DNA of 64,000 nucleotides from Lepidodermella squamata (lineage: Eukaryota; Animalia; Gastrotricha). The stretch lies in contig JBLDXI010000015.1 of assembly GCA_047495785.1 (NCBI GenBank), positions 3,906,001-3,970,000 of the forward strand, written 5' to 3'. The translations under genes and the position numbers were made by a program. Shown here one piece after another: positions 1-63,228 of the stretch (the stretch's first letter is position 1; the number at the start of each line of letters is the position of its first letter). Below the pieces are notes generated by a model, which saw nothing but the letters and a program-made list of their open reading frames with translations, made no database searches and was not told the origin of the DNA.

Positions 1-3000
1 CGTCGGTCGGCAAAGTCATGGTTGCTACAACTTTTCTGTTCAGCGTCATTTCTCTCGTTGTCTACATGGTCGACACGTTATTGTACGCCTGATTATTTCG
101 AAGCCCTGATTTTTTCATCAAACAATTGTTTCCCCCCTCACCTAGGTATCATGTCGAAAGCTGTATGCCCTGGAACGGTGCTTTCACCCGCCAAATAGAT
201 CTCGTCCTCAACATGTATTTTCTCATCAACTTTTTCCTTCGGGTGAGTATTCCGATGCGTATATATCATGTTATTGATTGCGTTTTTCTTGTGTTTCTTC
301 TCCGCCGTCGCGCCGCTGCTTGCTAGATTATGAATTACATAAACCTGTAAAAACGCGCGCCGATATTATTTTTAGTAGCGGCACGAGAGACTAGTCTGTA
401 GAGGAGAAGAAAAAAATCAATTAAAATGAGCCTAATCAGGTGTAACTAATTCATGGTGTTTACATTTCACAGTTTGTTGCGGCTGAGGACAAGCTTATCT
501 TCTGGACAAACATTTATTCGATTGTCGATTATTTTACCATTCCGCCTGTTATCCTCGAAACCGTCATGAACCGATCTTGGATAGGTAAATTTTCGAAAAA
601 AAATTGAGATGAAAAATGATTGATGATTTTTCTTATTTTTTTCAGGACTTCGGTTCATGCGTGCCATTTGTTTTATGCAATTTTCGGACATTTTACAATT
701 TCTTCACATTTTACGCACTGGCAACAGCATACGTTTAGCTCAGCTAGCCTCAATCTTCCTTACCGTTTGGGTTGCTTCAGCAGGAATGTTTTATTTGGTA
801 AGTTGTGCTTTTTATCGATTATCAGCTCGCTAAAAATAAATTGCGTGTCTACAAAATTGGGACAGTAAAATCAGCCCACCTAGCGCGATACGTTGCTATG
901 TCCATGGCTATTTGCGTAAAACGCAAACGCAAACGCAAAATGACGTATTTTCCGCTAGAAAATCGACCTAAAAACAATAATGATGAGAGGACTAAAAACT
1001 AGGTCACGCACTAGCCGAATTACGTGGAAAGGTCAAATTTTATAGCTAAAACAATTTGCATGACCTATAGGCAATAAATATGGAAAATGCGTAATTATTT
1101 CAGGAAAGTAATTTTAAGGAGGAATTTTTGAAAAATGATGGTAATTTTTTTATTTTATTTTTTTGCAAATATAGTTGGAGAATACTGGCGATCCGTTTTA
1201 TTCGTACCAAAATTCGCACGACATAGACTATTTCAACTGCATGTATTACCTCCTGGTGACAATGTCGACGGTCGGCTACGGCGATGTAACGCCGACGACC
1301 GTTCTCGGCAAGATTTTCGTTGTGTTGTACATTCTTGGCGCGCTCGCCATGTTCGCCACCTTCATCCCCGAGATGGTCGAGTGCATATCGACCGACAAGT
1401 ACGGCGGCGAGTTTGAAAAAGAGCCGAACAAGCCGCACATCGTGCTGTGCGGCAACATCGACTACCGATCCGTCGACAACTTCTTGAAAGACTTTTTACA
1501 CGAGGACCGAGAGGACATTAACATAACAACGGTGCTGCTAGATAAGCAGACACCGTCGTTGGAGCTACAGGCGTTGATGAAGCGCCACTTTACCAAGGTG
1601 CAGTTTTTTCGCGGCACGGTTATGAACAGCCGCGATTTGTGCCGCGTCAAGGTGAGCGAGGCGGACGCGTGTCTCGTGATCGCGAACAAGAACGCGGACG
1701 ACCCGCACGCCGAGGACATGGCGAACATCATGCGCGTGATAGCCGTGAAAAACTACTGCCAAAACATCCGCATCATCGTGCAGCTGCTGTGCTACTCTAA
1801 CAAAATCTACCTGATGAACATTCCCGGCTGGAACAAGGAGGACTGCATCGTGTGCCTGCCGGAGCTCAAACTCGGCTTCATGGCGCAGTCGTGCCTCGCG
1901 CCGGGCTTCTCCACGCTGCTCGCCAACCTGTTCACGATGCGCTCGGACAACGTCACCGACGACATGCCCGACTGGATGAAGGACTACGTTATCGGTGCTG
2001 GCATGGAGATGTACAAGGAACGGTTGTCGTACTCATTCACCGGCATGTCGTTCCCGGACATGGCGCTGCTGTGCTTCTTCAAGCTCAACCTGCTGCTGGT
2101 TGCGCTGCAGCAGTTCGACGAAACTTACAAGGAGACAACGCTCATTGTCAACCCAGGCAGCGACGTGCACATCGTCAGCTCGGCCGAGGGCTATTTCATC
2201 GCGCAGTCGGCCGAGGAGGCGAAGCGCGCCTTCTACTACTGCAAAATCTGCCACGACAAAGTCTCCGACCCTGACCAAATCAAGAAATGCGTCCACACAG
2301 AAGGTACGTCTAACATTTGAAACCACGAACCAACTTCACAATTCCAACCTCACTCGTACCGCCTCATTTTGCTTTAATTTTTAATTTTAATTTAATTTTT
2401 TTTCGTCGCCTTTAATTTTCATCCACAGAAGTTATTCGCCGGCAGCAACCAAATAATGGTTAAAAAAAACATGTGGAATTTTATAGATATATTTATATCG
2501 ATATCTTTCTATGCTAGCTGAATTTTGTTTTTGAAATATTATTGCATTTCTCACTCGGCCAGTCACTGATCACTTCCTGGCAAAAAACAATCACGTCATC
2601 GATATGACAGGAAAACCTTGGAAATCATCACCGGCAAAAATCCTTTACAGAAAATCACTCCATTCAACTTATAGTTACAGTAGCTACACTTAGCAAATTG
2701 GAATTCAACACTAGCAAAACCTGAAACATTCAGCTGGATGCTGATTGCTGAAAAAACACGAAAATTCATGGAATCGTAGTGTTAGCTCCGGGACCTATTT
2801 GTGAATAAGCATTATGTATCACAGCAAATGGCTCACATTTTTAACACGAATGATGGACCGAACCCCGAAATTTAGGGACTTGCTTTGCTTAGACCTTGAA
2901 AAGTGGAGTTTGGCAAAGCTTTTTGACATTGAGAGATTTTGATAACCCAGTAAAGATATCAAAATGAGGCGAATGATAATCACAGTTTCTAAGGAAATTA

Positions 3001-26391: not shown

Positions 26392-28875
26392 TCAGGCTGA
26401 CAGGCGTAGTTTCGGGAAAAGCAAGATGAGGCTCATTGTAGCCGAGTAGGCCAACTCGCCCATCGAAAACGCTAGGTTTTGAATGCACGGAACAACCGAA
26501 CTGCCAACAATCAGCATGATCAGAACAATAGCAATGAACAGAAAATCCGCGTTAACAACTGCAAGTTGGATGAGTTTGCACGTCAAGGCGTGTTCACTAG
26601 GAACTTGCCGCTTGCTAGCGTCATAAGCCAACGTACCAGCGTAGAACAACGCCAAACCGTGGATAACCAACATTGCGCCGATGAAGTATGTCATGTAATC
26701 CGATGAGCAGACTCGTATCGTTGTGTCAAAGTAGTTGTCGCTAACCTCGTCGAACTGAATCTCAGAAACTTGCAGATCAACAGCTGGGGAGTCCACGCCG
26801 TACCAAATAGCGAGAACTACGATGCAAGCTGCGAAAATGACCGCTATACCAGCAATGATGATGAAGTTGATTGTCTTGCGGCTGTGGTGGCATTCTGTAT
26901 CTTCAGCTGAGATTTTCGCCGGTGGAACAGGGCTTGAGCTCGTGACCACAAGGCCGCTCATACTTTCCGCAGGAGTCAGAATTTGTGCCCGCTTCATTGT
27001 CGGCGTATCAGGAGCTAAAACAGCTACCGATGACGCACTCACCGAACTTTTCCCGCTTAGTTTACTCTTACCAGTAGCCTTTGAGTTAACCGAACGCTTC
27101 GAAGAAGACGCCATGCCAGTTCCACTTTTGGCCTTCCGCGGGAAGTTCAGTAGCTTGGTATAGCAGAGCATATGCATTACAATAGTTCCATTTATCCCGC
27201 AGAGTCCAATCACTGATAGAGCAGGCCGCATGACGCATTCCGGTTTCGGGAAATAGTCACTTCCAACCGTTGCAGTCAAAGCAGAGGCGTTGAGAACCCA
27301 GCATGATACGATGAAGAAGCTTTTGTATTTGATTTCAAAGTACAGGTCAGGATCATTCCGCTTGCAAGCGATCAGGAGCAAGCCAAGTTGCCCTAAGGTG
27401 ATGATGAATGCTAAAGCGATCACGACTCCAACAGCCCCATCTCCACATTGAGTTAGACGTTTTTCAATTTCCGACAAATCCTTCGGCGGCTGCCCAGATT
27501 TCGTGAACCAGTTGATCTTGTTGTACTCGATGATTTTGAAGTTGGACAGGTTGAAGAAATTGGCTCCACTAGGCGCGATGAAGTTGAGCCGGAACAAAAT
27601 TCGAGGCCCAGTTGCGGCCATTTGCGACACGTAGACGTCCTCAGCGACTTCGCCTCGGATGTTAAACTTAACTGGGCCGATTCGAAGACCGTGAAACTCA
27701 GATTGCATTGCGCTGGAATTCGCAACCCTTTCAACAACTTGCGGATGTTTGTTGAAGTCTTTCAAAGTCATATTGTGATGATGCCTCAGCCTCGTCTCAG
27801 TTTTATTCAGAGCAACAACCGCAGCCATCATGGCGTCGTGGCAAACGTGGCGAAAGAAGTAGTCTGGAGCCTTCTCCCGTTCCTTTGACGTCTCGTTGAA
27901 CTTCGCCTCAAAGGTCCGATACGTGTATCCTAACGTGGTTGGTGTATCCATTTTCGGCTCAATCGCGTAGGTGAAATAGCCCGAGAAGAATGATATTTTG
28001 AACTGCTCGGCCACCATTTCTTTCGTACACATCGGGTCAGGCATCGTCAGACTGCTCAAATCCGCCGTAATTGCGCAGTACGAGATGTTTATGAAAACGT
28101 AATGAGGCGCCCTGATACCCAACATGTATGTATAACAGAACAGCTTCATGCAAAGAGCAAGGGATAGAATGTTCATCATGATGATCCGGGCGCCACTTTC
28201 TTTCAACGCCCTCACAGAGTCCATTGTTATGTCAAACTCTCGGGTGTAGTAGACAACTTTGATGTTGTTATCAGTTAGGACGGTGTACAATTTTTGAGCC
28301 GTCAAATAGACATTAGCATTTGTTGCATCTGTTATCAGCGCGACCTGTTTCCAACCTCCGAATTTCTGAGCGAGAGCCAAAGCGCCTGGCACAGTATTAT
28401 CCCCCAACATTTGGAGTGAATACAGTGATTGAAATATATTCTTCTTCGAGGCGATGAACGGCCCATGACATTGCTGGGAAAACGTTGTCAAATGAAGTTT
28501 ATGGATCGTATGGGCGGAGCTCTGGCAAGCAACTGTTGGTCCAACCATAACTGGCGACATGTAGGTGCCCTCTGGGATAGGCTTATTCTGGAACGCCATG
28601 ATTCCGGAGTTCGAGAGTTGTGAGCTAGCTGGGCCTTCGTTTTGGATGTCTGGTTCGATCTCGTAGTCGGGAAGAATGTCTCGCTGAGCATTCGCGTAGT
28701 CAACGACGAGCTGCATCGTCGTTGCGCAAGCTGGCAGAGTCGTCTGGCCCTTTGCGTCGAACGGAAGCAGGACCAACATTCGAAGCTTAGGCCTCTTCGC
28801 ATCTGTTGCATTCGGCTCAAATCCCGAAGCCGCAGTTGCGAGAAATGTAAGTATCAAGAATTGTTTTGTGTACAT
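26392..28875 (-). CDS. Intronless class C GPCR (GABA-B receptor-like: Venus flytrap plus 7TM)
   Basis: Signal peptide MYTKQFLILTFLATAASG, then VDYANAQRDILPDY, GWKQVALI, LKESGARIIM and HDAMMAAVVALN. Seven hydrophobic segments ending LFPKL. No cysteine-rich domain. Confidence 0.85.
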   Translation of the reverse strand: MYTKQFLILTFLATAASGFEPNATDAKRPKLRMLVLLPFDAKGQTTLPACATTMQLVVDYANAQRDILPDYEIEPDIQNEGPASSQLSNSGIMAFQNKPIPEGTYMSPVMVGPTVACQSSAHTIHKLHLTTFSQQCHGPFIASKKNIFQSLYSLQMLGDNTVPGALALAQKFGGWKQVALITDATNANVYLTAQKLYTVLTDNNIKVVYYTREFDITMDSVRALKESGARIIMMNILSLALCMKLFCYTYMLGIRAPHYVFINISYCAITADLSSLTMPDPMCTKEMVAEQFKISFFSGYFTYAIEPKMDTPTTLGYTYRTFEAKFNETSKEREKAPDYFFRHVCHDAMMAAVVALNKTETRLRHHHNMTLKDFNKHPQVVERVANSSAMQSEFHGLRIGPVKFNIRGEVAEDVYVSQMAATGPRILFRLNFIAPSGANFFNLSNFKIIEYNKINWFTKSGQPPKDLSEIEKRLTQCGDGAVGVVIALAFIITLGQLGLLLIACKRNDPDLYFEIKYKSFFIVSCWVLNASALTATVGSDYFPKPECVMRPALSVIGLCGINGTIVMHMLCYTKLLNFPRKAKSGTGMASSSKRSVNSKATGKSKLSGKSSVSASSVAVLAPDTPTMKRAQILTPAESMSGLVVTSSSPVPPAKISAEDTECHHSRKTINFIIIAGIAVIFAACIVVLAIWYGVDSPAVDLQVSEIQFDEVSDNYFDTTIRVCSSDYMTYFIGAMLVIHGLALFYAGTLAYDASKRQVPSEHALTCKLIQLAVVNADFLFIAIVLIMLIVGSSVVPCIQNLAFSMGELAYSATMSLILLFPKLRLSA

Positions 28876-29594
28876 ATGAAGTGGTTTGAAAATCAAAATG
28901 AAAATCTTGGAACTGCTGGTTCCAGTACAGCTCCGGGGGTATTTATGCAGCAAGTTTTTGCGGCTGATTAAATTCGAGTTAATAAAACAAATGCATTTTT
29001 TCAGGTTCAAAGACTTTTCAACATTGTAATCACAATTTTCCTTGATTAGTTAAGCTGGAGACATTATGTACAAAGATTAACGCATTTTAATGTGGGTGTA
29101 TTTCAATTTTTGGCTGGTTTTTCTTAGCAAACGCTCAATTAGCTGTAAGTAAACTGTCGGATGAACATGTTTACAGCATGAAACAGCTTCTTATAGTGTA
29201 CAAAGTGACTGTAAGAATGTCTGTTTATCAACACTAAAACTGATGACTTTGAAAACGAAGACTTTTTAGGGGGGGGGGGGGGGGGGAGTTTAATCGAGAT
29301 CATTCTCAGCTGGGTCGAGTCGATGCGTGGATCAAGGATGATTAAAAAAATTTGAAACGAACACGAGGGAACATGAATACTGGCTACGAATGTCCCCACT
29401 GTTCAATTTCTAATAGCTGTCCAATGAACAAGAAGAATTTCCCAGGGCATTTGAAATGCTTGAACCTTGTTCATTCCTTGATACATGCTGAATAAGGCTT
29501 TCCTGCTGGATGTCTGAAACTCGAAAGTAGAATCGCTTCACATTTTTTTTACTTCGATTGACAATATAAACGGTAACAATAATAAAAATTTGAA

Positions 29595-48170: not shown

Positions 48171-49410
48171 TCATAGGTCACGAGTAAAAACAGCGTCTTC
48201 ATCTTCGCAATTGTTAATTTTTTGGTATTTTAGGCTCCTCGATTCGATCGAATGATTATCATTTTGGCACTTGGACATGCATCTACAATTTTTATTAATA
48301 TTAATAAAATTCGCGAAAAATTCAAAATCCAATTCACCTTACGACAAGACCTATTAGCCCAGTAATTGCCATACAGCCGAAAAAATTGAAACTGAGTGAT
48401 ATAATAAAAAATAGAGAAATTATCTAGGAAAATAATGGTTGAACAAACCAGTACATCATCACGATATACATAGAGTTATCCTGTGAATAAATGTCCCATG
48501 TCGTTTGGCGACCGTTCCATGGTGGGGCTAATATCCACTCAATCTAAACAGAAACATTACCAAATTCGAATATGGAAATTCGACTAAAAATAAATCTTAC
48601 ATTGCAGAGCCAAGTTCCTTGAACAATGAAAAAAGTAGCCCTGGTAAGTGAGAGCAAAAAGTGACTTTTGACGAATATCTCCACAATCACGAAAATGGCT
48701 GTCGTGAAGATTGTGTAGACTAAAAGATCGTGCACTGCCATCTTTTGAAAAATAGGTTGAAAAATAGGTAGGAAAAATAGGTTTTGAAGCTCTCAATCCT
48801 AAGTCGCCTACCTGAACTACAGGATGTTGATCACCGTGCGAACCCATCGGATGACGATGATTCGAGAACGCCATCCCTTCTACCACGAAAGCTAAGGCCG
48901 AAACGGCTAAAAGCAAGAGGTTATTAAAGAGCTGGTTAGTCATCAGGTTAAATCTACCGAAATCGGTGCGTTTCGGTATCCAGGAAATTTTGAAAAACAT
49001 CAAAATATCGACCAATCCAGTTATTCCGAAAGCTGTGAACATCGCAACCTGATATGGAGAAATATTGTAAAAGTTTCACTTTGTGGCCGTAATTTTACAT
49101 GAACTGTGTTTCGAGCGCCAATCTTGCCGCTATCTCCCCTGATATCAATTTTAAAAATACAGCTCGATTTTTCATTATTTAAATGAATATTTTACATGTA
49201 ACCGGTGGTGATTTCGAAGAATGATCCCAGTGCTGTAGCCAGAATTTTCAGGACCCCTTCAACGGGTAAATTATTGCCGAAACATGAGTAGCTTGACAGT
49301 AATTTCAAGCACTCCTGATTGCGATAAAAATTGACGTACATGCTGGCAATGTGCCATAACCCGAAAAGGATGAAGAAAATGCCCGGAAGCACATGACCTG
49401 GGTAGAACAT
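48171..49410 (-). CDS. TMEM45: TMEM45-like (DUF716) multi-pass membrane protein; multi-exon
   Basis: N-terminus GHVLPGIFFILFGLW, then LPVEG, MFTAFGITGLVD, LAFVVEG, VHDLL and QGTWL, all typical of TMEM45. Confidence 0.85.
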
Positions 49411-49826
49411 TGGCAACGATTTTATTAAAGCAACTCTGGTAGCCTATTATTTAACAGCACTCTTCACCTACGCTTTGTTTTTTTATATTAATTTTTTTGT
49501 TACGAATACTATATACACTAGGTTGTTATTGCAGTACTTGTCATTTTTAAGTTTTTCTTTGAGTATAAATGCGTATTTTTATGAAAAAAACCAGTTGATA
49601 AAAAGTGATAGACACCGACCGCAACTGTAATCATTTCGAGGATATCATGATCTAATTTTGGGCCGTAAAATTGGTATCTCGCCTGTCCGCGATAAGCTTC
49701 TGGTCAAAAACTGAGTCCTTATCTGCTGCATTTTATCTTGTGCAAATTGCGGAGAGCAGTTACGAGGAACAAGTAGCGAGGTGAGAGTCCATTCTCGATT
49801 TTCGTTTTTCTTTTTTTCCCATATTT

Positions 49827-52800
49827 ATGGCCTCAATAACTGACAACCCGTCGGTCTACCTTAGTTTTTGCCGCCAAAGTGAACGCTGCTCGGATGTAGC
49901 TCAACTCGCTAGCCTACTACGCGAGAAAAACGGCGTTGTATTTCGAGGCGATGAAAATGAGAAATGCAGCTCGGAGGTTGCCTCAAAAGTAAGAAATTGC
50001 AAGATGAACGATTTGCCGAAAAATTAATTCCTAAATTAAGGCCATCAACGACTCGGACGTCGTTATCATTTTCATCACTTCAGAGTACTATGACTGCGAG
50101 AATTGTAAACGCGAGGCTGAGTACATTTTCAACAAGAAAAATGGCTTTGTCCCAGTGCGAATGTCCTCGCGACCTCTGAATGGCTGGATTGGATTGTCCA
50201 TCGCCGGGAAGCTCTACGTTGATTTCTCAAGAAATTCTTCCAACTCCGGGGAGGTTTTCAAGTCCACTGCGGCTGAAATCTTCAAGAAAATCTACGGCTA
50301 CTTGAGAGCCCAACAAAAACACGGTGGACTAGAGACTGCGTTCAAGTATGCAAAAATTAATAAAAAAATCGTTAAAATCCCGCCCCAAATTTTTTTTCAG
50401 GGCTGAGATTGAAAGTTTGCATATCGAAGTTGAGAATGATCGGCTCGAGAAGGTTCGAAAGGCGAGAGAGTCGAGAGAAATAAAATCGCGGTCAAGTTTG
50501 AGCCCTCTTCCGAGCTCATCAGCAAGCTCAGTCATTTTGGACCCGAATCGCGAGCCTCAAGTCTTGGTTAGCTACGACTGGAGGCAAGATCCAAGTGAAG
50601 TCGGAGAAATAATTGAACAGTTGAATACGTACGAAGTTTTGGCCTATAGTACGGATGGAGACGCGGCAAATTCTTTCTATCAGGACATAACACAGGTTTC
50701 TAATACCTTGGAAAACCGCATAATTTATGTAATTTACATTTGGCTAGATTGTTCAAACCGCTGATGTTGTCGTAGTGTTGTTCTCGAAAGCTTACAAGAT
50801 GAACAATGAATGTAAAATGACCGCCGACTGGGCGAAAAGACTCCGCAAAATAATCATCCCCGTGAGACAAGAACTAGAATGTGCTGTTGACGGCGAGCTA
50901 GAAGTGATATTCGGTGGTGACGAAGTGATCGATCTGCCTTCTCTGAAAAGCCCTTCAAAGTGCGCATCTGCCATCATCGAACGAATCGCATCACTTCGGA
51001 ATAACAGGTAAAATACCCAAATAATCATTTGACGATTAAACCTACTATACTATAAATAGTATTGAGCGTCGAAAGCAAGACTCATCGGACAAAAAAAAGC
51101 CAGGTCACACCGCAGTTCCAAGCAAGTCAAAGTTAGCTATAGTCTAATAGTTGTTTATTTTCGCTTTTTTAGGCGACGAAGAGAGGCTGCAGATATTTGT
51201 TTCTTATTGCCTACTATCAGCCGAGCGGCTGGCGAGTGTAGAAAAGGTGATAGCAGGTTTGAAAAAGCGAACCGATCTCGTCATCGGTGTTGGAAAAGAT
51301 TCGCATGAACATTTTGATCGAAGCAGAATCGCAAAGGTAATCTGATTTTTTTTCATTTAACCCTTTCACGGCGGGAAGGACGATTTCGGAATTTCGACTT
51401 TGAAAATTCGCAGAAAATTGAATTCGATGAATTGTTGATCGTCCTTTCCAGGAATATTGCTTTTCGATGTTGGCTACACGGTTTTGAGACAAGTTCGCCG
51501 TTATCTTGCATGGTCAGGACATACAAGCAATTTGAAAATAGTCAACCTGAGATTGAAGTTTCGATTTTTTTCAACTTGAAATTTCATAGGTTTCTGATCA
51601 TTGTTTGATTCAACAAAAAATACCACCGTGTCCGCCATAGTCTCATTGACCTCTGTGTAAATTTTTTCGAGTTGGAAATTAAAATTGACGACGCTATTGA
51701 CATTTAATCAAACCGGCCGAAATCGTCCTATCCGCCAGGACTCATACAGGCGGAGTGCGTGGTTTTTGTGCTGCAAAAACTGTCGCGAGCAAAAACTGGA
51801 ATAGCTGAATTCAGATCTGAATGCTGAGCCTCTGAAACTTTTTTAAACTGAATGTTTTCGGCGATTTAAGTGAGGGAGAATATTGGGGACATTCATGGGA
51901 GTAATTTATAATCTAAAATTCCAAAGCTGGAATCACCTGACACAGAAAATAGGGTGTTCGAAAAATCTGCTGAAATCAGCTGGGCGGATAGGACGATTTC
52001 GGCCAGTTTTTGTACAGCATTAACGGTGATAGATAGAGATAAACGGGTTTCAAAATCGTGATCGGGGCCCTTTAAAACCCCTAGAACTGCCGTCAAATAT
52101 TTTTTCTCCCGCAGATAAATAATTCCGTCATGAAAGGGTAACTCTTCATCTCTTCTAAATTAACAGATGATTGAATGCTGCAATTACGCGATAATCTTTG
52201 TAAACCGAGGCTCCAGCGCTTGTGGCATATGCGCTCGAGAAATTGATTACGTTTTGAGGACTGAAAAGCGCTACGTTGTAGTCGAGCTCGAACGTGACTG
52301 CACATCCTCGGGGGCTGATGGTATCCTCGGAAGTGGCAAAATGCCAGTTGAATTCTTCTCGGATAAGGATCCTATCGTAGCTGAGCTAGAGCTGCTCTTT
52401 CAAATGTTCAAATATTTCGAAAAAAATGGCGCCCAGCAACTGCTCCAGTATTACGAGTTTGTTTTAATAGCTTTTGAAATTGTGTTTTTTTCAAATTTTT
52501 TCATTAATAGGCTTCAGAGGTTGCAAATTCAACAAGAATTAATCAAGCAAATGTCGCATCAGCGCCCTAATACTGAAGAATCTGATTACCTTCTAAGCAA
52601 AAGGCTCAGGCCAAGGAAGCGGGAACCACTCAAGAGTAAAAACTACCACTTATTGATTTCTAGATTGATTCTAAATTCTATTTCTTATTGTTTAGGGACA
52701 ATTCGTAAAGCTGACCCAAACTCTGAGATCAAGGTTTTCATAAGCTACAACTGGTCACAAAAAGCTGAGGACTACAAAGCTGTCGCAGCTCTTCTCCGTC

Positions 52801-53261
52801 AAACAAATGAATACTGCCCGATAAACGTTTGGATCGATGAGAAGAACATGGAAAATGATTTAAGGGATAACATGTCAAAGGTAAAAGGATAATTCAGATC
52901 AATAACAAAATTATTATTAATTATTATTATTATTATTATTATTAGCTAATATTATTAGCTAATATATTATTATTAGCACGGTGGCTCAGTTGGGTTGATG
53001 AGCAACTGTGTATCTGAGGGGATATTGCTCGGGACTGGGTTCAAGTCCTAGTGACGGAACCAGGATCGAGTCCCCCCTTGGCCCCGCGGTGGTTTTACCA
53101 ATCCATCGCGTTACAAAATAGAAAATTGGGAGACTGGGAGTGTCAGCTAGACTGCACCAGTCAAATCCCGTCATACGGAAATCTTACTCACTTACGATAA
53201 GACCTAGGGCTAGAGTAAGTGGCATGCCCTTCTAGTCCTCAAAGCTCGCTTTGAAACAGAA

Positions 53262-53303
<42 letters not shown>

Positions 53304-56300
53304 GGCGTTTATCTCAGGGTATCGAGGGCAGCGATGTTGTTGTAATTTTCCACACCCCGCAATACCTGCAACGACCCAATTGCAAGAAAGAGGGCCATTA
53401 TGCGATTGACAATAACCTCTACGTCATACCGGTTCAAGTCGAGCCGGACTCTCCGATTGACCAATGGCTGGCGCTGCGTCTTCGGGACAACCAGGAAGCG
53501 ATTGCATTCGACAACGCAGAACAAGTTGCTGCGGCTATTTTGGACCGAATACTCGTTGCCTTCAATTTCAAGTAAAAACCTAGAGCAATGTAATAATTGT
53601 CTTCTATTTACTCATTTTAGGGTCAAGCGGCATAATTTACCCAGCGAAGTAGGCGAAACGATCAGTCGAAAGGACTATGGTCCCCTCAGAGCAATGATAC
53701 AAACATTGTGTTTAGAGCCATCAAAAAGTTCAGATTTTGGAAAATTTCACAACTTCACCTTCATCTTTCTGCTTCTAGAATGTCTCTCTATGCTCGTTTT
53801 TGGGGAGGCAAATGTTGGAAAAACTGCTCTTGTCGCAAACGCTCTCAGCGACCAAGCGAGCGAAGCTTATCTACTCAAAGAGTGCCGGGTCCGATTCGTT
53901 GGATGGATCAGTGCTTCATTAGACAGCAACGTTTTCGAAAGAACCACATTTCTCGAGCAGCTAAGAGAACTCTTCTACGAAACCACTGGGATCGCTATCA
54001 GTCAACTTACGGTGGCCGCCTTCAAAAAGGCCCTCGCCCAAATTACCGACGAAAATAACCTGTTTTTGCTGGTCATTGATGATATTAGCAACATCGAAGT
54101 CCTGCAACTAGTCAGCGAACTTGGGCCATCTGTTCGTTGTATAGCGATTTCTAGCGTTCTCGGTGAAGAATGTATAGACAGCAACGTTGGTGTGTTCAAA
54201 TGCTTGAATATCGCCCTCAGCCAGGAAGAAGCAGCCGACGTGTTGCTAAGCATCACCCCGCGGAATCGTAACTCGCAATACAGGGGCGACGTCAAAGCCC
54301 TTGGAGCGAGACTGAAGGCGAAGCCTTCTATGCTAAGATTGTGCAGGTCTGCACTAAATCTACGCCACACTGATTCGAACGCGTCAGACTTCGATAGGCG
54401 CCTCAGTTCTCTCCTTGTTGTCGACTCTGAACTGGATGATAAAGACGTGCTGCTTGACATAATGACCAAGTTCTTCCAGCAGAAAGACGTCCCTGTCACT
54501 CAACAGATGTTTCTTACTCTGATGATCTTCGAACCGGGAGAAAACATTGATGTCAAAGACCTGGCTTGTATATGGGGTAATTCAGGCAGCATCAAGCTGA
54601 TCTGCCGAGCTCTTGAGGAGAACTGCCTACTGAAAGTTGTTCGCAAGTCAAGCGAGGCGAGGAGGGTCGTTTTCGATTCCGCAATTCAAGGCGCGGCAAT
54701 TGAATACGCGGCAAAGTCAGGATTCGCAAATTCGAAAGAAGCCTTGATTTCCAAAGTTATCTCCCTCGATGTACTCAGGAACACTGCGAAGCGCATGAGG
54801 TCCAGTCTTTTGAATAGACTGATAAATCTTCTTGACGAGAAAACTCTAGCGGAACGTTGCAAGTTTCGCTCCCCGGTGACGAATAACAGGAACTTCCTTC
54901 AATTCCTTTACTCCTACAAAGATCAATGGCGGATTTTCGAAGGAACTGATTCGGAAAAGAGCATTGCGATTGAATTTATGCTGAAAATTCTGCAAAGGCT
55001 CTACAATGCTGATCCAGATGTGATCAAAGAAATTGTATCAGCCTCGGATAATGAAGGCGACTGTTTGTTACTTCAAGTCATGGATAACAAGTCGTATAAC
55101 AAGAAAATTGAACATCAACAACTAGCCCACGTCTTGGAGTCTATGGGAGGTTATCGGATCCAAACTTCATGTTTAGAGAGCCGGTACTGGATCCTTCTTA
55201 CTAAGAAGCTTGCGGCGAAATCGAATCACCTGTTGATTTTTAAAATACTTACCGGTGAAATCCACTCCGTGGTCAAGTCGATTCCGACAATGGCGGACAG
55301 CATCAATGACAGATGTGAACCATCGGGGGAAACTGCGTTATCAGTAGCTTCCGCTAAAGGATTGGATAGAGTTGTAGCTCGATTAATCGAACATGGCGCT
55401 AACGTTAACATTTGCAATGTCGAGGGCGTTACTCCATTGCATAGATCGTCATTCAACGGGCACTTGAAAATCGCGAAACTTATTTTCGAGAATGGCGCTA
55501 AAGTCGATGCGAAGGATACGAAAGGCTTTACAGCTCTAATGAACGCTGCGATCGCAGGCCATTTTGAGGTTGTTACTTACCTCGTAAAATCGGCGAATGC
55601 TAACGTGAATCTTCGCAGTAAGTTAGGCTTTACATCACTAATGTTCGCGGCGCGGAATGGTTATAGGAAAATTGTTGAATTTCTATGCGAAAATGGAGCT
55701 GACGTGAATGCGAGGACTGAGCAAGGTGGGACTGCGTTCAGATACGCGGCTCAACATGGCCATCTAGAAATTGTCGAGTATCTTGCCGAAAAAGGAAAGG
55801 CACTAGCAGCCGAATCAGAAATAAACACCCGTCTTCCTCCTGTGATGATCACAGCCGCGATGAATGGCCATTTTTTCATGGTTCAATACCTGGTTGAGAA
55901 GGCCAAATTGTCGCCGTTGTGTCTGGATTCTCAGAAACATACTGCTTTAATGCATGCTGTTCGCCATGGTCACCTGGCCGTTGCGAAACTCCTCCGCGCC
56001 TATCGTGTTGACGTGAATGCGGCTAATGAAAACGGAACCACAGCTCTGTTTTACGCAGCTTATTACGGATTTGTTGAAATAGCGAGATTTTTAATAGAAA
56101 ACGGGGCTAGAATCAATGCGAAGAATATTCCCGGGCAAACACCGATCATGCGAGCTGTCGAGGGTGATCAGCGTGATATGGTCGTCTATCTCCGCGAAAA
56201 CGGGGCCGAATTGACGCTGACAGACGCGCGTGAAGGCAGCAGTTGCTTGATGATAGCCGCAAAAAATAATAACCCGGAAATGGTTCATCTTCTACAACGC

Positions 56301-56600
56301 CTCGGTGCCGATTTGAACCAAACTAATCGAGCTGGGCTGACTCCTATCATGATGGCTGCACGTAAGGGCTTCAGCGAGGTTGTCGAGGTTCTGCTAGAGT
56401 ATGGCGCCGATGTCGAGGTGGAGGATTCGCAGGGTTGGAATGCGGTCACCCATGCGAAGAAAGGCGGGCATTTCGATATTGTGGAGAAACTGACGGAAGC
56501 CGGGGCGTTGTCACAGACTGTTATACCGATTAGTCACATTGCCAGCCCTATGAGTTTAGGGCCAATGATGTCATTAATGCCGCCGAGTAACGAGGACTAA
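49827..56600 (+). CDS. 4xTIR - STAND NTPase (NB-ARC-like) - ankyrin repeat protein; multi-exon, large last exon approx 53621-56600
   Basis: Four TIR starts (VYLSF, VLVSYDW, IFVSY, VFISYNW), each followed by a DVVxxF..Y..C..E-type exon. Walker A GEANVGKT and Walker B FLLVIDDI. Winged-helix DLACIW. About 11 ankyrin repeats. Confidence 0.85.
51361..52138. mobile_element. Older piggyBac-like MITE in an intron of the TIR gene
   Basis: Left end TTAA|ccctttcacggcgg; right end ccgtcatgaaaggg|taac (2 mismatches, degenerate TSD). Confidence 0.6.
52977..53300 (+). mobile_element. tRNA-derived SINE with (TTA)n tail, intronic
   Basis: A box TGGCTCAGTTGG near 52982 and B box GGTTCAAGTCC near 53038, then a non-tRNA body and a (TTA)n tail. 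Inserted within a TTA microsatellite. Confidence 0.75.
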
Positions 56601-56707
56601 TTATCATTATTATTCAAGTTATTCAAGTAAACTCAATTGGAATCAATAAAAATTTTCGATTTTATTCTATTACAAATGATTTCTTACTCATATGGCCTGT
56701 AAATTTT

Positions 56708-57062
56708 CTATCTAATCAACAACGCCGCAGTAAGGCGATTCGACTTCGGTGTCAATAAAAAACCGACCAGTAAATTTGTTGACATTCGTATCGTAGAGTA
56801 GGGTTTTATTCGCGTGCCAGCCCATGCGGGTGCTGATTCCTGATAGGGCGCCGTGCATGGTGTACACTTACTAGCCGGGGCCTTGGCGCAACTCCTCGCG
56901 ACATAGAGACAAGTCTCGCCGATCGACAAGGTGAATAACTCCAAGGCACGGCGAGATGAACAGCGTTGAGGTAGGTCAGAGTCCTTACCCTCACATTTAG
57001 GTTGGGCGTGAAGGTTCCAATTTACGAAAAAGTCCATATGCCACACAGCCTCATCCGCACCA
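56708..57062 (-). pseudogene. Duplicated 3' fragment of the lipase-like gene (frameshifted, 5'-truncated)
   Basis: Nearly identical to 61913-62260. A small indel near 56830 shifts the frame (QESAPAW vs QQCIRMGW). Confidence 0.85.
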
Positions 57063-57383
57063 TAGAACCAATAAGAGTAATCTCACAAAATTCCAAGAGC
57101 TGATTTCATCAGATGCCATCACGTCCTGAACCTCAACAGCTACTACGGCTGGTCACGCGGTCTTCCTCACTAACGCCTAGATAACGTAGCAAACTCGCTG
57201 ACCACTGGATCGATGTTGACGCTGACGACAGGCTCGACTTCGAAAGCTGATGATCAGCTGATCCACGGTCACGTCCGCGTCCACGGCCGCGAGCACGCGT
57301 AGAAATTTCCCCGTAATACGAGCGGAATAGATTGCAGGGCTTATAGGAATGATGAGCTGCAATTTCAGCATTTTGTACATCGT

Positions 57384-58901: not shown

Positions 58902-61127
58902 CTAAGCGAAAACGGGATAGAAAATTATAGCCGTTATTGAGGCTGACAAAAGCATGCAAGCTACAGCAATCGTATCTTGACTCGCTATCAGTGATGACTG
59001 CGCTAACAGAATGGCAAATATCGACGCAACTGAAATAGTGACCAAGTTTGCCATTGCTATGCCGAAAACACGATCTTTCCGTTGTATTCTTAGCGACCGA
59101 AGCCTAAACGCAAGTAAACATCCTGTAAATTGTAGGAATAGATGAACGGCTGCAAATGCGAGGTAATAAGCGTCTTGCGCCGCTGACAGACACACCGGTT
59201 CTAGCATCAGCGTGAGAGTATCACTTTCAAGGTCATATAGTTCCTTCGCACTTTTCATCCACTTCAGATGAGGTGGGTCTGATACTACCAAAACAGTGGC
59301 GATAATAAAATTCACAATTGTCCAGCAAATAATTGCAGTGACTACTTTGATGTGGTGTTTAGAGTAGACATGGATGTACTCGGTTCTACCTCGCCTCGAA
59401 GCAACAGACCTTTTACCCGGCTTGTAACTGCTAGATCTCAATAAAGCATACCTTTTAAATTGCTTGGCGCTGTGGGCTAAGGAAGCTAGCCTGAAGAAAA
59501 CGGAGCCATCTAAAACCGACATCCCGATAATTACGAGAACAGGTCTTATACGGCATAGATCTGCAGTTAAAGCGTAAAATATCGCTGCAGAGTCAAGAAT
59601 AACGCATCCGATAAGCAAGACGCGATAATCCCACGCGTGAGAGAAACGTGACTTTTTCTTCAGTCTGGGGTGTAAAAATATGCCCAAATTAGCAACGGCC
59701 GTTAGCGATGCGCAAGCAATGATTGCAACAGTGGCAGGTACACTGAGACGTATTTCAATTATTGAAATTGACGCTGAGTCTCGAGGAGGACGTGAATCAT
59801 CAGTTGCCCAATCAATGCGTAGCAGCTCCACGATGCTCCCCAGCGATTCCGGAACTTGTTTGAAATGGGCTTGATGGCCGCGTTTCGCGTTCCAAGATTG
59901 AACATATAGCGGGTCATCATCAAATTCCAATCGCTTTGAATATTTCAGAGGGCCTGTTCTAAGCCCGATGAAATCAGTATCAGCAACACTGTTATTGACA
60001 ACCTTCATAATCGTTTCGGGTTCAATTTTGAAATCACGTAGCGATTTCCCAATTAGGGACAATTGTTTTTCAGATTTATCCAAAGCTAAAACTGCCATCA
60101 GCATCATATCGTGGCAGTTATACTGGTCCGCGAAGTCTGATGTTGCATTTTGTCGAATTTGCCGAAATTTTGATTCGTAAACAGATTTGCTCATGCCAAG
60201 GATAGACGTATTTGAGTGGTTTTCCATGGGAATCCGGGGTGGGCCAAAAAGAAAAGATTGCTGATACTGCGCAATAATCATTTCCTTCGTACATCCAGGA
60301 CTAATTACATCAGGTAGACCTAAAGGGTCCATTGTACCGGATGTGCAAAACAGAAAAGCATATCGACTACCTCGTATGCCAGATGCGTGTGCGAAGCAGA
60401 AAAATTTGAGTAAAACTGGAAGCTCAGCAATGTGGAGAACAAATATTCTGGCGTCACTACGCTTCATTGATTCGACAGTTGCCATGCTGATCTGTGGTCC
60501 GACATCAACCCACACAAGGCTGACGCCGAAATGGTCGACCATCGAATAAAAATGAGTAGCTAGCATTGTGTTATAAGAATTTTCCGCGTTTGCGTACATA
60601 GCTATCTTCGTCCAGCCCATGCGTTTCACAAAGTGGAGAGCGATCGAGTGGTGCATTTCAGCTGAGCTATAAACGCGATATAAATTAGGAAATATCTTGC
60701 GATTCTCTGTGTATATAGGACTCAAGCACGAGAATGCGATAGCCACGCTGTGTATGTGATGTGCCATAGCTCCGAAAGACTTACAACCAGGCGTGAATGT
60801 GCCGCCAAGAATGATAGGAGACTGATAGGTCGAAACCAAATTCTTGTCCATTTCGCGCGAAAAAGAAACAGCAAGCTTGGTGTCAAACACGCCACCTGGG
60901 CCGTCGTCTAACGCCCGAACAAGGATGTGGTAGTCGGGCAAGATATCTGATCTGCGGTTGATTTCTCCCGCGACGAACTGAGCTGCAGCAGTGCAAGTCA
61001 TCTTATCGACTGGAAGGTTTTGTTCTCCTAACAGATGCAGAACTGTGAGGTTGTAAGGTTTTGATACCGACAATTTGACTGCTAAGGAGACGAGGAACAA
61101 TCCTCTAACGATGTTTATCGGCTGCAT
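58902..61127 (-). CDS. Intronless class C GPCR (GABA-B receptor-like), paralog 2
   Basis: Signal peptide; INRRSDILPDY, FPNLYRV, MGWTKIA, MKRSDARIFV, HDMMLMAVLALD; 7TM ending FYP. Confidence 0.82.
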   Translation of the reverse strand: MQPINIVRGLFLVSLAVKLSVSKPYNLTVLHLLGEQNLPVDKMTCTAAAQFVAGEINRRSDILPDYHILVRALDDGPGGVFDTKLAVSFSREMDKNLVSTYQSPIILGGTFTPGCKSFGAMAHHIHSVAIAFSCLSPIYTENRKIFPNLYRVYSSAEMHHSIALHFVKRMGWTKIAMYANAENSYNTMLATHFYSMVDHFGVSLVWVDVGPQISMATVESMKRSDARIFVLHIAELPVLLKFFCFAHASGIRGSRYAFLFCTSGTMDPLGLPDVISPGCTKEMIIAQYQQSFLFGPPRIPMENHSNTSILGMSKSVYESKFRQIRQNATSDFADQYNCHDMMLMAVLALDKSEKQLSLIGKSLRDFKIEPETIMKVVNNSVADTDFIGLRTGPLKYSKRLEFDDDPLYVQSWNAKRGHQAHFKQVPESLGSIVELLRIDWATDDSRPPRDSASISIIEIRLSVPATVAIIACASLTAVANLGIFLHPRLKKKSRFSHAWDYRVLLIGCVILDSAAIFYALTADLCRIRPVLVIIGMSVLDGSVFFRLASLAHSAKQFKRYALLRSSSYKPGKRSVASRRGRTEYIHVYSKHHIKVVTAIICWTIVNFIIATVLVVSDPPHLKWMKSAKELYDLESDTLTLMLEPVCLSAAQDAYYLAFAAVHLFLQFTGCLLAFRLRSLRIQRKDRVFGIAMANLVTISVASIFAILLAQSSLIASQDTIAVACMLLSASITAIIFYPVFA

Positions 61128-61155
61128 TTCAATTGACTGCTGAAAAAATGGGTCA

Positions 61156-61542
61156 GTGCAGGTTTTAAACAGCGACGCGCTCATCAAAAATGAAACCTGA
61201 TATCAAGTATCATATGATGCAGGTTTGGCACAACCCCGAACCCCGGTTTTAAACGCGCTCATTAAAAATGGATGTGGCTATGTGAACACAGGAAAAGTGT
61301 ATCGCCCAAAATGGCTATGCGTACACACATTGCGTGACACACAGCCAGATTTAAGCGCGCGTTGTGTTCAAGTAGCCAATCACGCACGCACAATGTGTAC
61401 GTATAGCCATTGGGTGATCCTGTGTTCACATAGACAGGACCAAAATGCTGAAAAGATCGGTCCGTGCAGGTTTTAAACAGCGACGCGCTCATTAAAAATG
61501 AAACCTGATATGTATCATATGAAGCAGGTTCGGCACAACCCC
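61156..61542. repeat. ~85-bp direct repeat (2 copies plus a partial) upstream of GPCR paralog 2
   Basis: gtgcaggttttaaacagcgacgcgctcat...ggcacaacccc at about 61156 and 61464; partial copy near 61246. Confidence 0.75.
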
Positions 61543-61639
61543 AACAATTGTCCCTTCGCAAAGGAATTTTACCAACATTAACACGTTCACCGCGGCAGCT
61601 AATAATCAGGGAGCGCTCACAACAGCCGTCTGAAGCCGT

Positions 61640-61770
61640 GCTAACGTGAATCTTCGCAGTAAGTAAGGCTTTACTGCACTTGCGACGCGGAATGGTTATA
61701 GGAAACTTGTTGAATTTCTATGCGAAAATGGCCAATGATGTCATCAATGCCACCGAGTAACGAGGACTGA
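61640..61770 (+). pseudogene. Relic of the 3' end of the TIR-STAND-ANK gene with an internal deletion
   Basis: Matches 55599-55696 joined directly to 56560-56600; contains indels. Confidence 0.85.
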
Positions 61771-61912
61771 TTAATCATTATAATTAATTAATTGTTATTA
61801 TTCAAGTTATTCAAGAAAATTCAATTGGAATAAATATAATTTTTCGATTTTATTCTAACACAAAATTTGATTTTATACTCATATGGCCTGTAAATTTAGC
61901 AAATTTGTCTAT

Positions 61913-63228
61913 CTAATCATCAACGCCGCAGTAAGGCGATTCGACTTCGGTGTCAATAAAAAACCGACCAGCAAATTTGTTGACATTCGTATCGTAGAGT
62001 AGCGTTTTATTCGCGTGCCAGCCCATGCGGATGCATTGCTGATAGGGCGCCGTGCATGGTGTACACTTACTAGCCGGGGCCTTTGCGCAACTCCTCGCGA
62101 CATAGAGACACGTCTCGCCGATCGACAAGGTGAATAACTCCAGGGCACGGCGAGATGAACAGCGTTGAGGTAAGTCAGAGTCCTTACCCTCACATTTAGG
62201 TTGGGCGTGAAGGTTCCAATTTACGAAAAAGTCCATATGCCCAACAGCTTCATCCGCACCTAGATCACCCAGACTCACCACACTGTCCCGCTCATTACCA
62301 ACTGAACCACCTGTTGTAGTGTGGATCACATCCACCTGCCCAGCATCGGTCTGATCCAAACATTGATGGCCACATCCCTTAGGCACGGTCGGGTTTAACG
62401 CGCTTATCCTGGCGAGCGGTTCGTGGAATGAATCCTGAAGTTGGGCACAAATGTGAGCTCCGATATCAACGCCGATACAATGAAGACCAAACTGCGGCAA
62501 AATTGTGTGGCGCTTGTTGTAGAGACGATGCAAAAATTTACCTAGAATTCTTGGGAAAGAAATTCGATTAATAATTGAAGAAAAGATTTTTTATAATTTT
62601 ACCTTGCTGCGACTCGAGAATTGCTGAAGGCCGTTGAAGCTCTGCGTTTAAAATTCGCATTGCTGACGACGCTTGTATAACCGCCGAAACTACCTCCCCG
62701 CCAGTCGACGACTATAACGTTACATTCACATCTGTAAACCATTTTCCGGGCCAGTTCGATGACCAAGATATTGGCGGCATTCATGCCAAATCCGTGGACG
62801 AACACCTTCAACGGCCGATCGTCCATGAAATTAACGCTCTCAGCCGTGACCGGTAAATCTTCGACCGTCGACGACTCGGGGGTGTACAGGTAATACCTAA
62901 GCGGCATTCCAACGGGCGGGATGGGTAACGGTAGACCGTTATAAGGTGGCTGGTCGTTCGTGAAGCAAATGCCATCTGCGTAACAAACGCGCCGGCTTTT
63001 GCCCGTGTTAACATCGGGCGTATCGTCGAAACGCTGCCCGAGCCCGGCTACGTTCGTGCCGCTGCTTCTAGCGGTTTTATCCGCCGACGATAATCCACGT
63101 GGTTTGTCCCGGGGCGATTCCGAGCCGATTAACTCGGTGCCTCCGCCTTCGTCCGGGTACAGTTGATTGAGACACCCTGCAGCGGGTCTGATGATCGCAC
63201 TTGAAATAAGCAGAATAGTAAACAGCAT
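61913..63228 (-). CDS. Secreted pancreatic-type lipase-like protein (triad substituted); one intron approx 62541-62602
   Basis: Signal peptide; VCYADGICF, FVHGF, NVIVVDW, HCIGVDIGAH, RISALNP, LDQTDAGQVDVIHT, GHMDFFVN, QPKC, CSSRRA. Confidence 0.85.

Follow-up and report, generated by a model that had tools for sequence, protein, structure and literature searches.

A putative NLR-type receptor gene with four tandem TIR domains, a divergent STAND-type NTPase and an ankyrin array in the gastrotrich Lepidodermella squamata

Proteins that combine TIR domains, STAND-type NTPases, and repeat domains in various ways have been described from several animals. An Apaf-1 homologue with a TIR domain (TIR-NB-ARC) was reported from amphioxus in 2007 (PMC2246300), Hydra viridissima combines TIR domains with NACHT/NB-ARC domains, and Acropora combines NACHT/NB-ARC domains with ankyrin repeats (PMC7642931). 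In placozoans, NB-ARC proteins with WD40/TPR repeats have been expanded (PMC6321704). More than one TIR domain per polypeptide is known from the Toll-2 family of molluscs, which has two C-terminal TIRs (PMC4929906), and from TirE of Dictyostelium with its two diverged TIRs, and a recent TIR atlas lists several animal TIR clades as uncharacterised (10.64898/2026.04.30.722052). Here we describe the gene at 49827-56600 on the plus strand of a 64,000-nucleotide (nt) stretch of the genome of the gastrotrich Lepidodermella squamata (NCBI GenBank assembly GCA_047495785.1, contig JBLDXI010000015.1, positions 3,906,001 to 3,970,000 of the forward strand). In the following, this whole stretch is called the window and all positions are counted from its first letter. 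The locus is best explained as a single 11-exon gene for an NLR-type intracellular switch that has four TIR_2 domains, a divergent NB-ARC-like STAND NTPase, and a sensor of 12 ankyrin repeats and that would act by the mechanism proposed below, an explanation that we consider probable although far from certain.

The domain order resembles that of the animal TIR-NB-ARC and TIR-NACHT proteins, which are found in lineage-specific expansions and also start with a TIR, continue with a STAND NTPase, and end with a repeat sensor that is not built from leucine-rich repeats (LRRs). However, those reports concern proteins with a single TIR domain whereas the four-TIR protein has four in tandem, and its NTPase stays below the Pfam thresholds of both NB-ARC and NACHT. 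TIR, NTPase, and ankyrin repeats in one protein are not among the combinations listed in the amphioxus, Hydra, and Acropora reports. With mollusc Toll-2 and Dictyostelium TirE the protein shares the presence of more than one diverged TIR per polypeptide, but these have two TIRs, which belong to a membrane receptor in one case and to an RCC1 protein in the other, and no four-TIR head on a STAND NTPase. Our literature searches did not reveal any four-TIR STAND protein. An earlier note on this DNA, made from the sequence alone, had called the gene the best candidate for an undescribed system in the window. This was overstated given the amphioxus TIR-NB-ARC protein, the TIR with NACHT/NB-ARC combinations of Hydra viridissima, and the ankyrin-type NLRs of Acropora. 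The receptor class itself is known and the system is not categorically new; new are the four-TIR head and the very divergent NTPase.

The gene model was obtained by three-frame translation and revised with complementary DNA (cDNA) contigs. Short open segments on the plus strand (49600-53800) run into an open reading frame (ORF) of 1066 codons (53400-56600), and the resulting 11 exons (Table 1) encode 1693 amino acids (aa) without any internal stop. Eight of the ten introns are only 49-60 nt long, and the remaining two are long and both contain repeat insertions. The splice sites in the model are GT-AG throughout, except for one GC-AG intron (51121/51122) whose donor belongs to a non-canonical class but is seen in cDNA. 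A GT donor at 51103 had been considered for exon 5 and was ruled out by the cDNA joint, which leads to the GC donor after 51121. The introns on either side of the predicted exon 8, of 54 and 60 nt, preserve the reading frame and contain no stops. It is uncertain whether there is an additional intron just 5' of the P-loop. The GT..AG ends of this segment, its pyrimidine-rich 3' part, and its length, which is usual for the introns of the gene, speak for an intron, while a helix predicted there by AlphaFold and a partial alignment to P0001, the only relative found (see below), speak against it. An AATAAA motif is present at 56645, 45 nt 3' of the stop codon.

Two public runs cover the stretch, X1 with cDNA and X2 with DNA contigs, of which X1, labelled as a run of presumed RNA, is regarded as cDNA because of a SMART cDNA adapter at one contig end. 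The X1 contigs are spliced exactly at the borders of exons 4 and 5 (51007/51060) and of exons 5 and 6 (51121/51173), and in one contig position 51007 is directly followed by 17 nt from the start of exon 5. The TIR exons are covered by cDNA as is the NTPase-ankyrin exon, the latter at 54332-54427 and 55044-55699. The gene is transcribed at least in part. Among the listed single-base differences in exons 9 of 13 are synonymous, compared to about one quarter expected if the sequence were unconstrained, and in exon 10 alone this applies to four of the five variants listed. The gene is real and intact.

Concerning the TIR domains, the Pfam models were run on the separate exon pieces. The cut-off of TIR_2 (PF13676, 28 bits) was passed by the C-terminal exons of TIR1 (35.2 bits, E 2e-8) and TIR4 (39.5 bits, E 1e-9), while the N-terminal half of TIR4 (24.2 bits, E 5e-5) and the C-terminal half of TIR2 (23.0 bits, E 1e-4) scored below it. 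The two TIR4 exons cover positions 1-44 and 43-111 of the hidden Markov model (HMM), so that they adjoin at the intron and constitute one complete domain. The exon pieces of TIR3 did not match any Pfam model. With an HMM built from TIR1, TIR2, and TIR4, TIR3 reached 26.9 bits compared to 10.3 bits for the best of 2000 shuffled sequences, and the same leave-one-out test gave 38-58 bits for TIR1, TIR2, and TIR4. All matches are to TIR_2 and not to the Toll/MyD88-type Pfam TIR model. No TIR or STAND match was revealed when the PDB sequences were searched with profiles of the NTPase and of the four C-terminal TIR exons and with the TIR1 exon.

In a MAFFT alignment of the spliced domains, a phase-0 GT-AG intron interrupts all four TIRs at the identical column, and every C-terminal TIR exon ends in phase 2. 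In addition, TIR3 and TIR4 have the same layout of three exons, for a linker (phase 2 to 1), the N-terminal half (1 to 0), and the C-terminal half (0 to 2). Because of the shared intron column and the shared phases the TIR exon module has to be regarded as duplicated, and because the pairwise identity among the four domains is only 16-27 % these duplications must be old. The CxxE motif after the third strand reads NCKRE in TIR1, ICARE in TIR3, and NCKKE in TIR4, so that these domains have a glutamate (Glu79, Glu441, and Glu641, respectively) in the column that we take, from motif knowledge and HMM coordinates and not from a structure, to correspond to the catalytic Glu known from SARM1 and from plant and bacterial TIRs. 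In TIR2 the motif reads ECKMT with Thr279 at this position. The Glu is also present in the TIR of P0001, and its retention in three old and diverged copies as well as in P0001 is the pattern expected for a residue under selection. The four TIRs, their intron at a similar position, the four motifs, and the origin by module duplication had all been proposed in the earlier note and were recovered here, the domains themselves with Pfam for TIR1, TIR2, and TIR4 and with the leave-one-out HMM for TIR3.

The NTPase contains the P-loop and Walker B motifs that had already been read from the sequence. In Walker B the two aspartates are followed by isoleucine; in NACHT domains they are typically trailed by extra acidic residues. 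The Pfam NACHT model (PF05729) did not match the NTPase at E-values up to 10, and neither NPHP3_N nor WHD_TANC1 matched. ATPase_2, AAA_16, and AAA_22 score higher than NB-ARC but also stay below their own cut-offs. Relatives are extremely rare. A word-indexed search of 5.8 billion proteins revealed none for the NTPase, and none for P0001 outside its own cluster, and a scan of the JGI metagenomes with the NTPase alignment revealed nothing. An exhaustive phmmer search of 1.84 billion representatives resulted in a single cluster, P0001/P0002 (E 3.7e-6, 25 % identity). As placed by motif order only, the four-TIR protein and P0001 share, in the order known from NB-ARC domains, the P-loop, the hhhhDD motif, the GxP (GLPL) motif (GHPLLA in P0001, degenerate in the four-TIR protein), and a hydrophobic-FEP-x(6-8)-LAxxWG block that is similar to the RNBS-D/winged-helix region of NB-ARC proteins. 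The residues FD, which the earlier note had placed at an MHD-like position, are present as VVFD (54666-54677), while their equivalence to MHD is assigned by motif order only and not by a tested NB-ARC alignment.

In P0001, a single ORF without interruption encodes the C-terminal half of a TIR domain, the NTPase, and a long array of ankyrin repeats, and the protein passes the Pfam NB-ARC cut-off with 29.2 bits. The N-terminal TIR half is found upstream in its contig, and the intron in between is at the same position as in the four-TIR gene. The P0001/P0002 contigs derive from an ENA metagenome and stop about 250 nt upstream of the TIR. Genes for a Band_7 protein, a kinase, and a 7tm_1 G protein-coupled receptor (GPCR) adjoin, and because of the kinase and the GPCR genes the source is an animal. 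A recent transfer from bacteria was considered and rejected because the intron is shared with P0001 and a PADLOC match is missing; the PADLOC models of bacterial defence systems (Avs, Thoeris) detected nothing for the NTPase.

In low-confidence AlphaFold models of the NTPase the secondary structure elements are ordered as in a STAND/AAA+ nucleotide-binding domain with helical domains behind it. With these models, the top Foldseek matches were Dark, Apaf-1, CED-4, and the NB-ARC domain of NRC1, with ORC and NLRC4 interleaved, and VIA-align gave Z-scores of 11.6 for CED-4, 10.8 for NRC2, and 10.3 for Apaf-1 over 203 residues, compared to only 7.1-7.5 for NAIP5, NLRP3, and NLRC4 in the same search. 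The AP-ATPases Apaf-1, CED-4, and Dark would provide the best or tied-best fold match of the nucleotide-binding domain, and the arrangement of the two Walker motifs (A before B), a helical domain, and a winged helix would agree as well. However, these proteins have a CARD instead of a TIR array as effector and WD40 instead of ankyrin repeats as sensor, and the sequence similarity is below the Pfam thresholds. The view that the domain is a STAND-type NTPase nearer to NB-ARC than to NACHT is supported by the NB-ARC score of P0001, the fold rankings, and the absence of a NACHT match. We therefore call it a divergent NB-ARC-like STAND NTPase, a candidate and not a proven member of the NB-ARC family in the strict sense.

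About 190 helical residues separate the winged-helix-like region from the ankyrin repeats, which are matched by Ank_2 with E 3e-80 and by Ank with E 4e-72. Instead of the about 11 repeats counted before we found 12 (aa 1270-1668), and the order of TIR, NTPase, and ankyrin domains is as it had been described. By language-model features, the nearest clusters (0.89-0.91) are STAND-ankyrin proteins of the ANKRD50/TANC/NPHP3_N type, which can serve as a lead only. These also have a P-loop STAND domain followed by ankyrin repeats but do not contain TIR domains.

By analogy to Apaf-1, CED-4, and the plant TIR-NLRs (TNLs), binding of a ligand to the ankyrin array could release autoinhibition, nucleotide exchange could then lead to oligomerisation of the NTPase, and oligomerisation would cluster the TIR arrays. 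TIR1, TIR3, and TIR4 would probably cleave NAD+ or produce a nucleotide signal, while TIR2 without its Glu might be a structural partner. The four-TIR head itself arose by old duplications of the TIR exon module with conserved intron phases. In plant TIR-NLRs such as RPP1, ROQ1, and WRR4A, an NB-ARC-type switch is likewise preceded by a TIR whose catalytic position is occupied by Glu, and in the tetrameric TNL resistosome four TIRs are the working unit. In contrast to the plant proteins, the sensor is an ankyrin array and not LRRs plus C-JID, the four TIRs are on one chain instead of being contributed by each of four protomers, the His of the MHD motif appears to be absent, the introns are of the animal type with about 50 nt, and nothing points to a recent common ancestor. 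The idea of the earlier note that active and inactive TIRs are already paired within the chain is attractive because exactly four TIRs work together in plant resistosomes. The four TIRs might form, in a single chain, the two asymmetric pairs for which a plant TNL resistosome needs four protomers. TIR2 as dedicated non-catalytic partner would open the active site of its neighbour, and the STAND-ankyrin part would gate a pre-assembled NADase instead of assembling one. We consider this special arrangement unlikely.

Several points weigh against the receptor as outlined. The junction between TIR4 and the NTPase (53571/53621) is absent among the cDNA joints listed and thus predicted, and the unspliced TIR4 exon meets a TAA at once. 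The isolated NTPase scores 12.7 bits (E 0.075) with Pfam NB-ARC (PF00931), which is below the cut-off of 23.5 bits. The sensor-1 Arg (TTR), expected after the fourth strand, and the His of MHD appear to be missing at the expected places, as judged by motif order only, in both the four-TIR protein and P0001. The two AlphaFold models, which were built from an alignment of three sequences, are poor with pLDDT (predicted local distance difference test) values of 41 and 45, so that the fold matches provide weak support, and in VIA-align ORC/Cdc6 reach Z-scores of 10.8-11.6, which are equal to that of CED-4. Finally, TIR activity requires a Glu at the catalytic position but is not guaranteed by it. 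With the same gene and the same switch, the TIRs could be non-enzymatic and provide a multivalent scaffold nucleating TIR-TIR adaptor assemblies as in Toll/MyD88 signalling, and the Glu would be incidental or structural. Such assembly is the signalling mode of most characterised animal TIRs, the Glu has been lost in one of the four copies, the copies have little identity left, and the bacterial NADase TIR models of PADLOC barely register (ThsB with E 0.012, TIR4 only). However, the preservation of the CxxE Glu in the three other copies and in P0001 is what selection would produce, and the domains fit TIR_2 and not the Toll/MyD88-type model. Therefore, we regard a scaffold without enzymatic activity as a possibility to be taken seriously but as rather doubtful.

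The missing cDNA joint over 53571/53621 would also fit two genes or products, a four-TIR protein that ends at the TAA after exon 10 and an NTPase-ankyrin protein that starts from a Met about 36 residues before the P-loop. In-frame Met codons do precede the P-loop, and retention of the 49-nt intron would lead to the immediate stop so that an isoform consisting of only the four TIRs could exist. On the other hand, the intron is a canonical GT-AG intron with the phase-2 boundary found at the end of every TIR module, TIR and NTPase are parts of a single ORF in P0001, and a separate promoter or 5' end was not seen. Based on the intron, its phase, and the P0001 ORF we favour the fusion of TIR4 and the NTPase in a single gene and think that two separate products are improbable. 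It is even harder to imagine that the locus is a functionless, decaying duplicate. This would be in agreement with the strong divergence of the NTPase, which is without some canonical NB-ARC residues, and with the broken partial copy of the 3' end 5 kb downstream, but a decaying gene should not have kept 1693 codons without stop or frameshift and intact splice sites, nor should it yield spliced cDNA or have more synonymous variants than expected. We disfavour this explanation as very improbable.

Table 1. Positions of the exons, domains, and inserted element of the four-TIR gene in the window.
Feature	Positions	Strand	Evidence and remarks
Exon 1: ATG and N-terminal half of TIR1, ends in phase 0	49827-49988	+	donor GTAAGA; in-frame stop 45 nt upstream of the ATG
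Exon 2: C-terminal part of TIR1, CxxE Glu79 at 50113-50115	50041-50345	+	Pfam TIR_2 35.2 bits, HMM 46-112
Exon 3: N-terminal half of TIR2 preceded by a charged linker	50401-50695	+	frame, GT-AG sites; cDNA contig 50506-50595
Exon 4: C-terminal part of TIR2, Thr279 (50820-50822) in place of Glu	50748-51007	+	Pfam TIR_2 E 1e-4; cDNA contig
Exon 5: linker micro-exon of 62 nt (phase 2 to 1) upstream of the GC-AG intron	51060-51121	+	cDNA joint 51121 to 51173
Exon 6: N-terminal half of TIR3	51173-51336	+	cDNA joint into 51173; leave-one-out HMM for TIR3
MITE-like insertion in intron 6, ~786 nt	51353-52139		high-copy, polymorphic
Exon 7: C-terminal part of TIR3, CxxE Glu441 at 52239-52241	52167-52456	+	
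Exon 8: charged linker, phase 2 to 1	52511-52635	+	prediction (GT-AG sites, pyrimidine tracts)
Exon 9: N-terminal half of TIR4	52696-52880	+	Pfam TIR_2 HMM 1-44, E 5e-5
Exon 10: C-terminal part of TIR4, CxxE Glu641 at 53390-53392	53318-53571	+	Pfam TIR_2 39.5 bits, HMM 43-111
Exon 11: NTPase, ARC/winged-helix-like region, helical linker, and 12 ankyrin repeats	53621-56600	+	stop 56598-56600
Possible extra 51-nt in-frame intron 5' of the P-loop	53728-53778	+	uncertain
Walker A (exon 11)	53802-53825	+	GEANVGKT
Walker B (exon 11)	54066-54086	+	LLVIDDI
ARC/winged-helix-like region (exon 11)	to ~54743	+	
Helical linker (exon 11)	54744-55313	+	
Ankyrin repeats (exon 11)	55314-56522	+	

The insertion in intron 6 resembles a miniature inverted-repeat transposable element (MITE), and its terminal inverted repeats (51360-51374 and 52125-52139) are 15 nt long. 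Its contig depth is about 10,000 compared to about 50 in the flanking sequence. One DNA contig of run X2 jumps from 51352 to 52139 and thus lacks the element, which means that the insertion is polymorphic. The repeat in intron 9 (52890-53310) has a contig depth of about 2,000-4,000-fold and lies between (ATT)n microsatellites. At its start it seems to be tRNA-derived but ARAGORN did not detect a tRNA in it, and the repeat is probably a short interspersed nuclear element (SINE). About 5 kb downstream of the four-TIR gene, a broken partial copy of its 3' end (corresponding to 55598-55696 and 56560-57066) is found at 61639-62264 on the plus strand. A stretch of about 95 nt from a single ankyrin repeat (88 % identity, with a stop) directly adjoins the last about 40 nt of coding sequence, the 3' untranslated region, and about 470 nt of downstream DNA, which are 89 % identical. 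The copy is located past a class C GPCR gene and extends into the end of a lipase gene on the opposite strand; it is the remnant of a segmental duplication.

The other genes in the window, including a BK channel, class C GPCRs, and astacins, are those of an animal, as had been supposed before. An exon of a BK (Slo) potassium channel (1175-2317, plus strand) is 60-63 % identical to nematode and 56-58 % identical to arthropod proteins, and 99 % identical to an ENA metagenome contig. Two class C GPCR-type genes are encoded on the minus strand (58902-61187 and 26392-29010). Both have an ANF_receptor domain and the first also has a 7tm_3 domain; this gene is arranged tail-to-tail with the four-TIR gene. 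On the other side, the start codon of the four-TIR gene is separated by 410 nt from the start (49416) of a divergent neighbour on the minus strand (48544-49416), which encodes a multi-pass membrane protein and did not match Pfam with the two exon ORFs tested.

In general, TIR enzymes are active only once their TIR domains are paired in a defined manner. With three Glu-bearing TIRs and one Glu-less TIR in a single chain, the four-TIR protein offers a compact test of how many TIRs are needed per active site and of the role of a 'dead' TIR. It also adds to the evidence for plant-like TIR-STAND receptors in animals outside the model phyla. Because its NTPase is so divergent that standard domain searches miss it, the number of such receptors in invertebrate genomes is probably underestimated.

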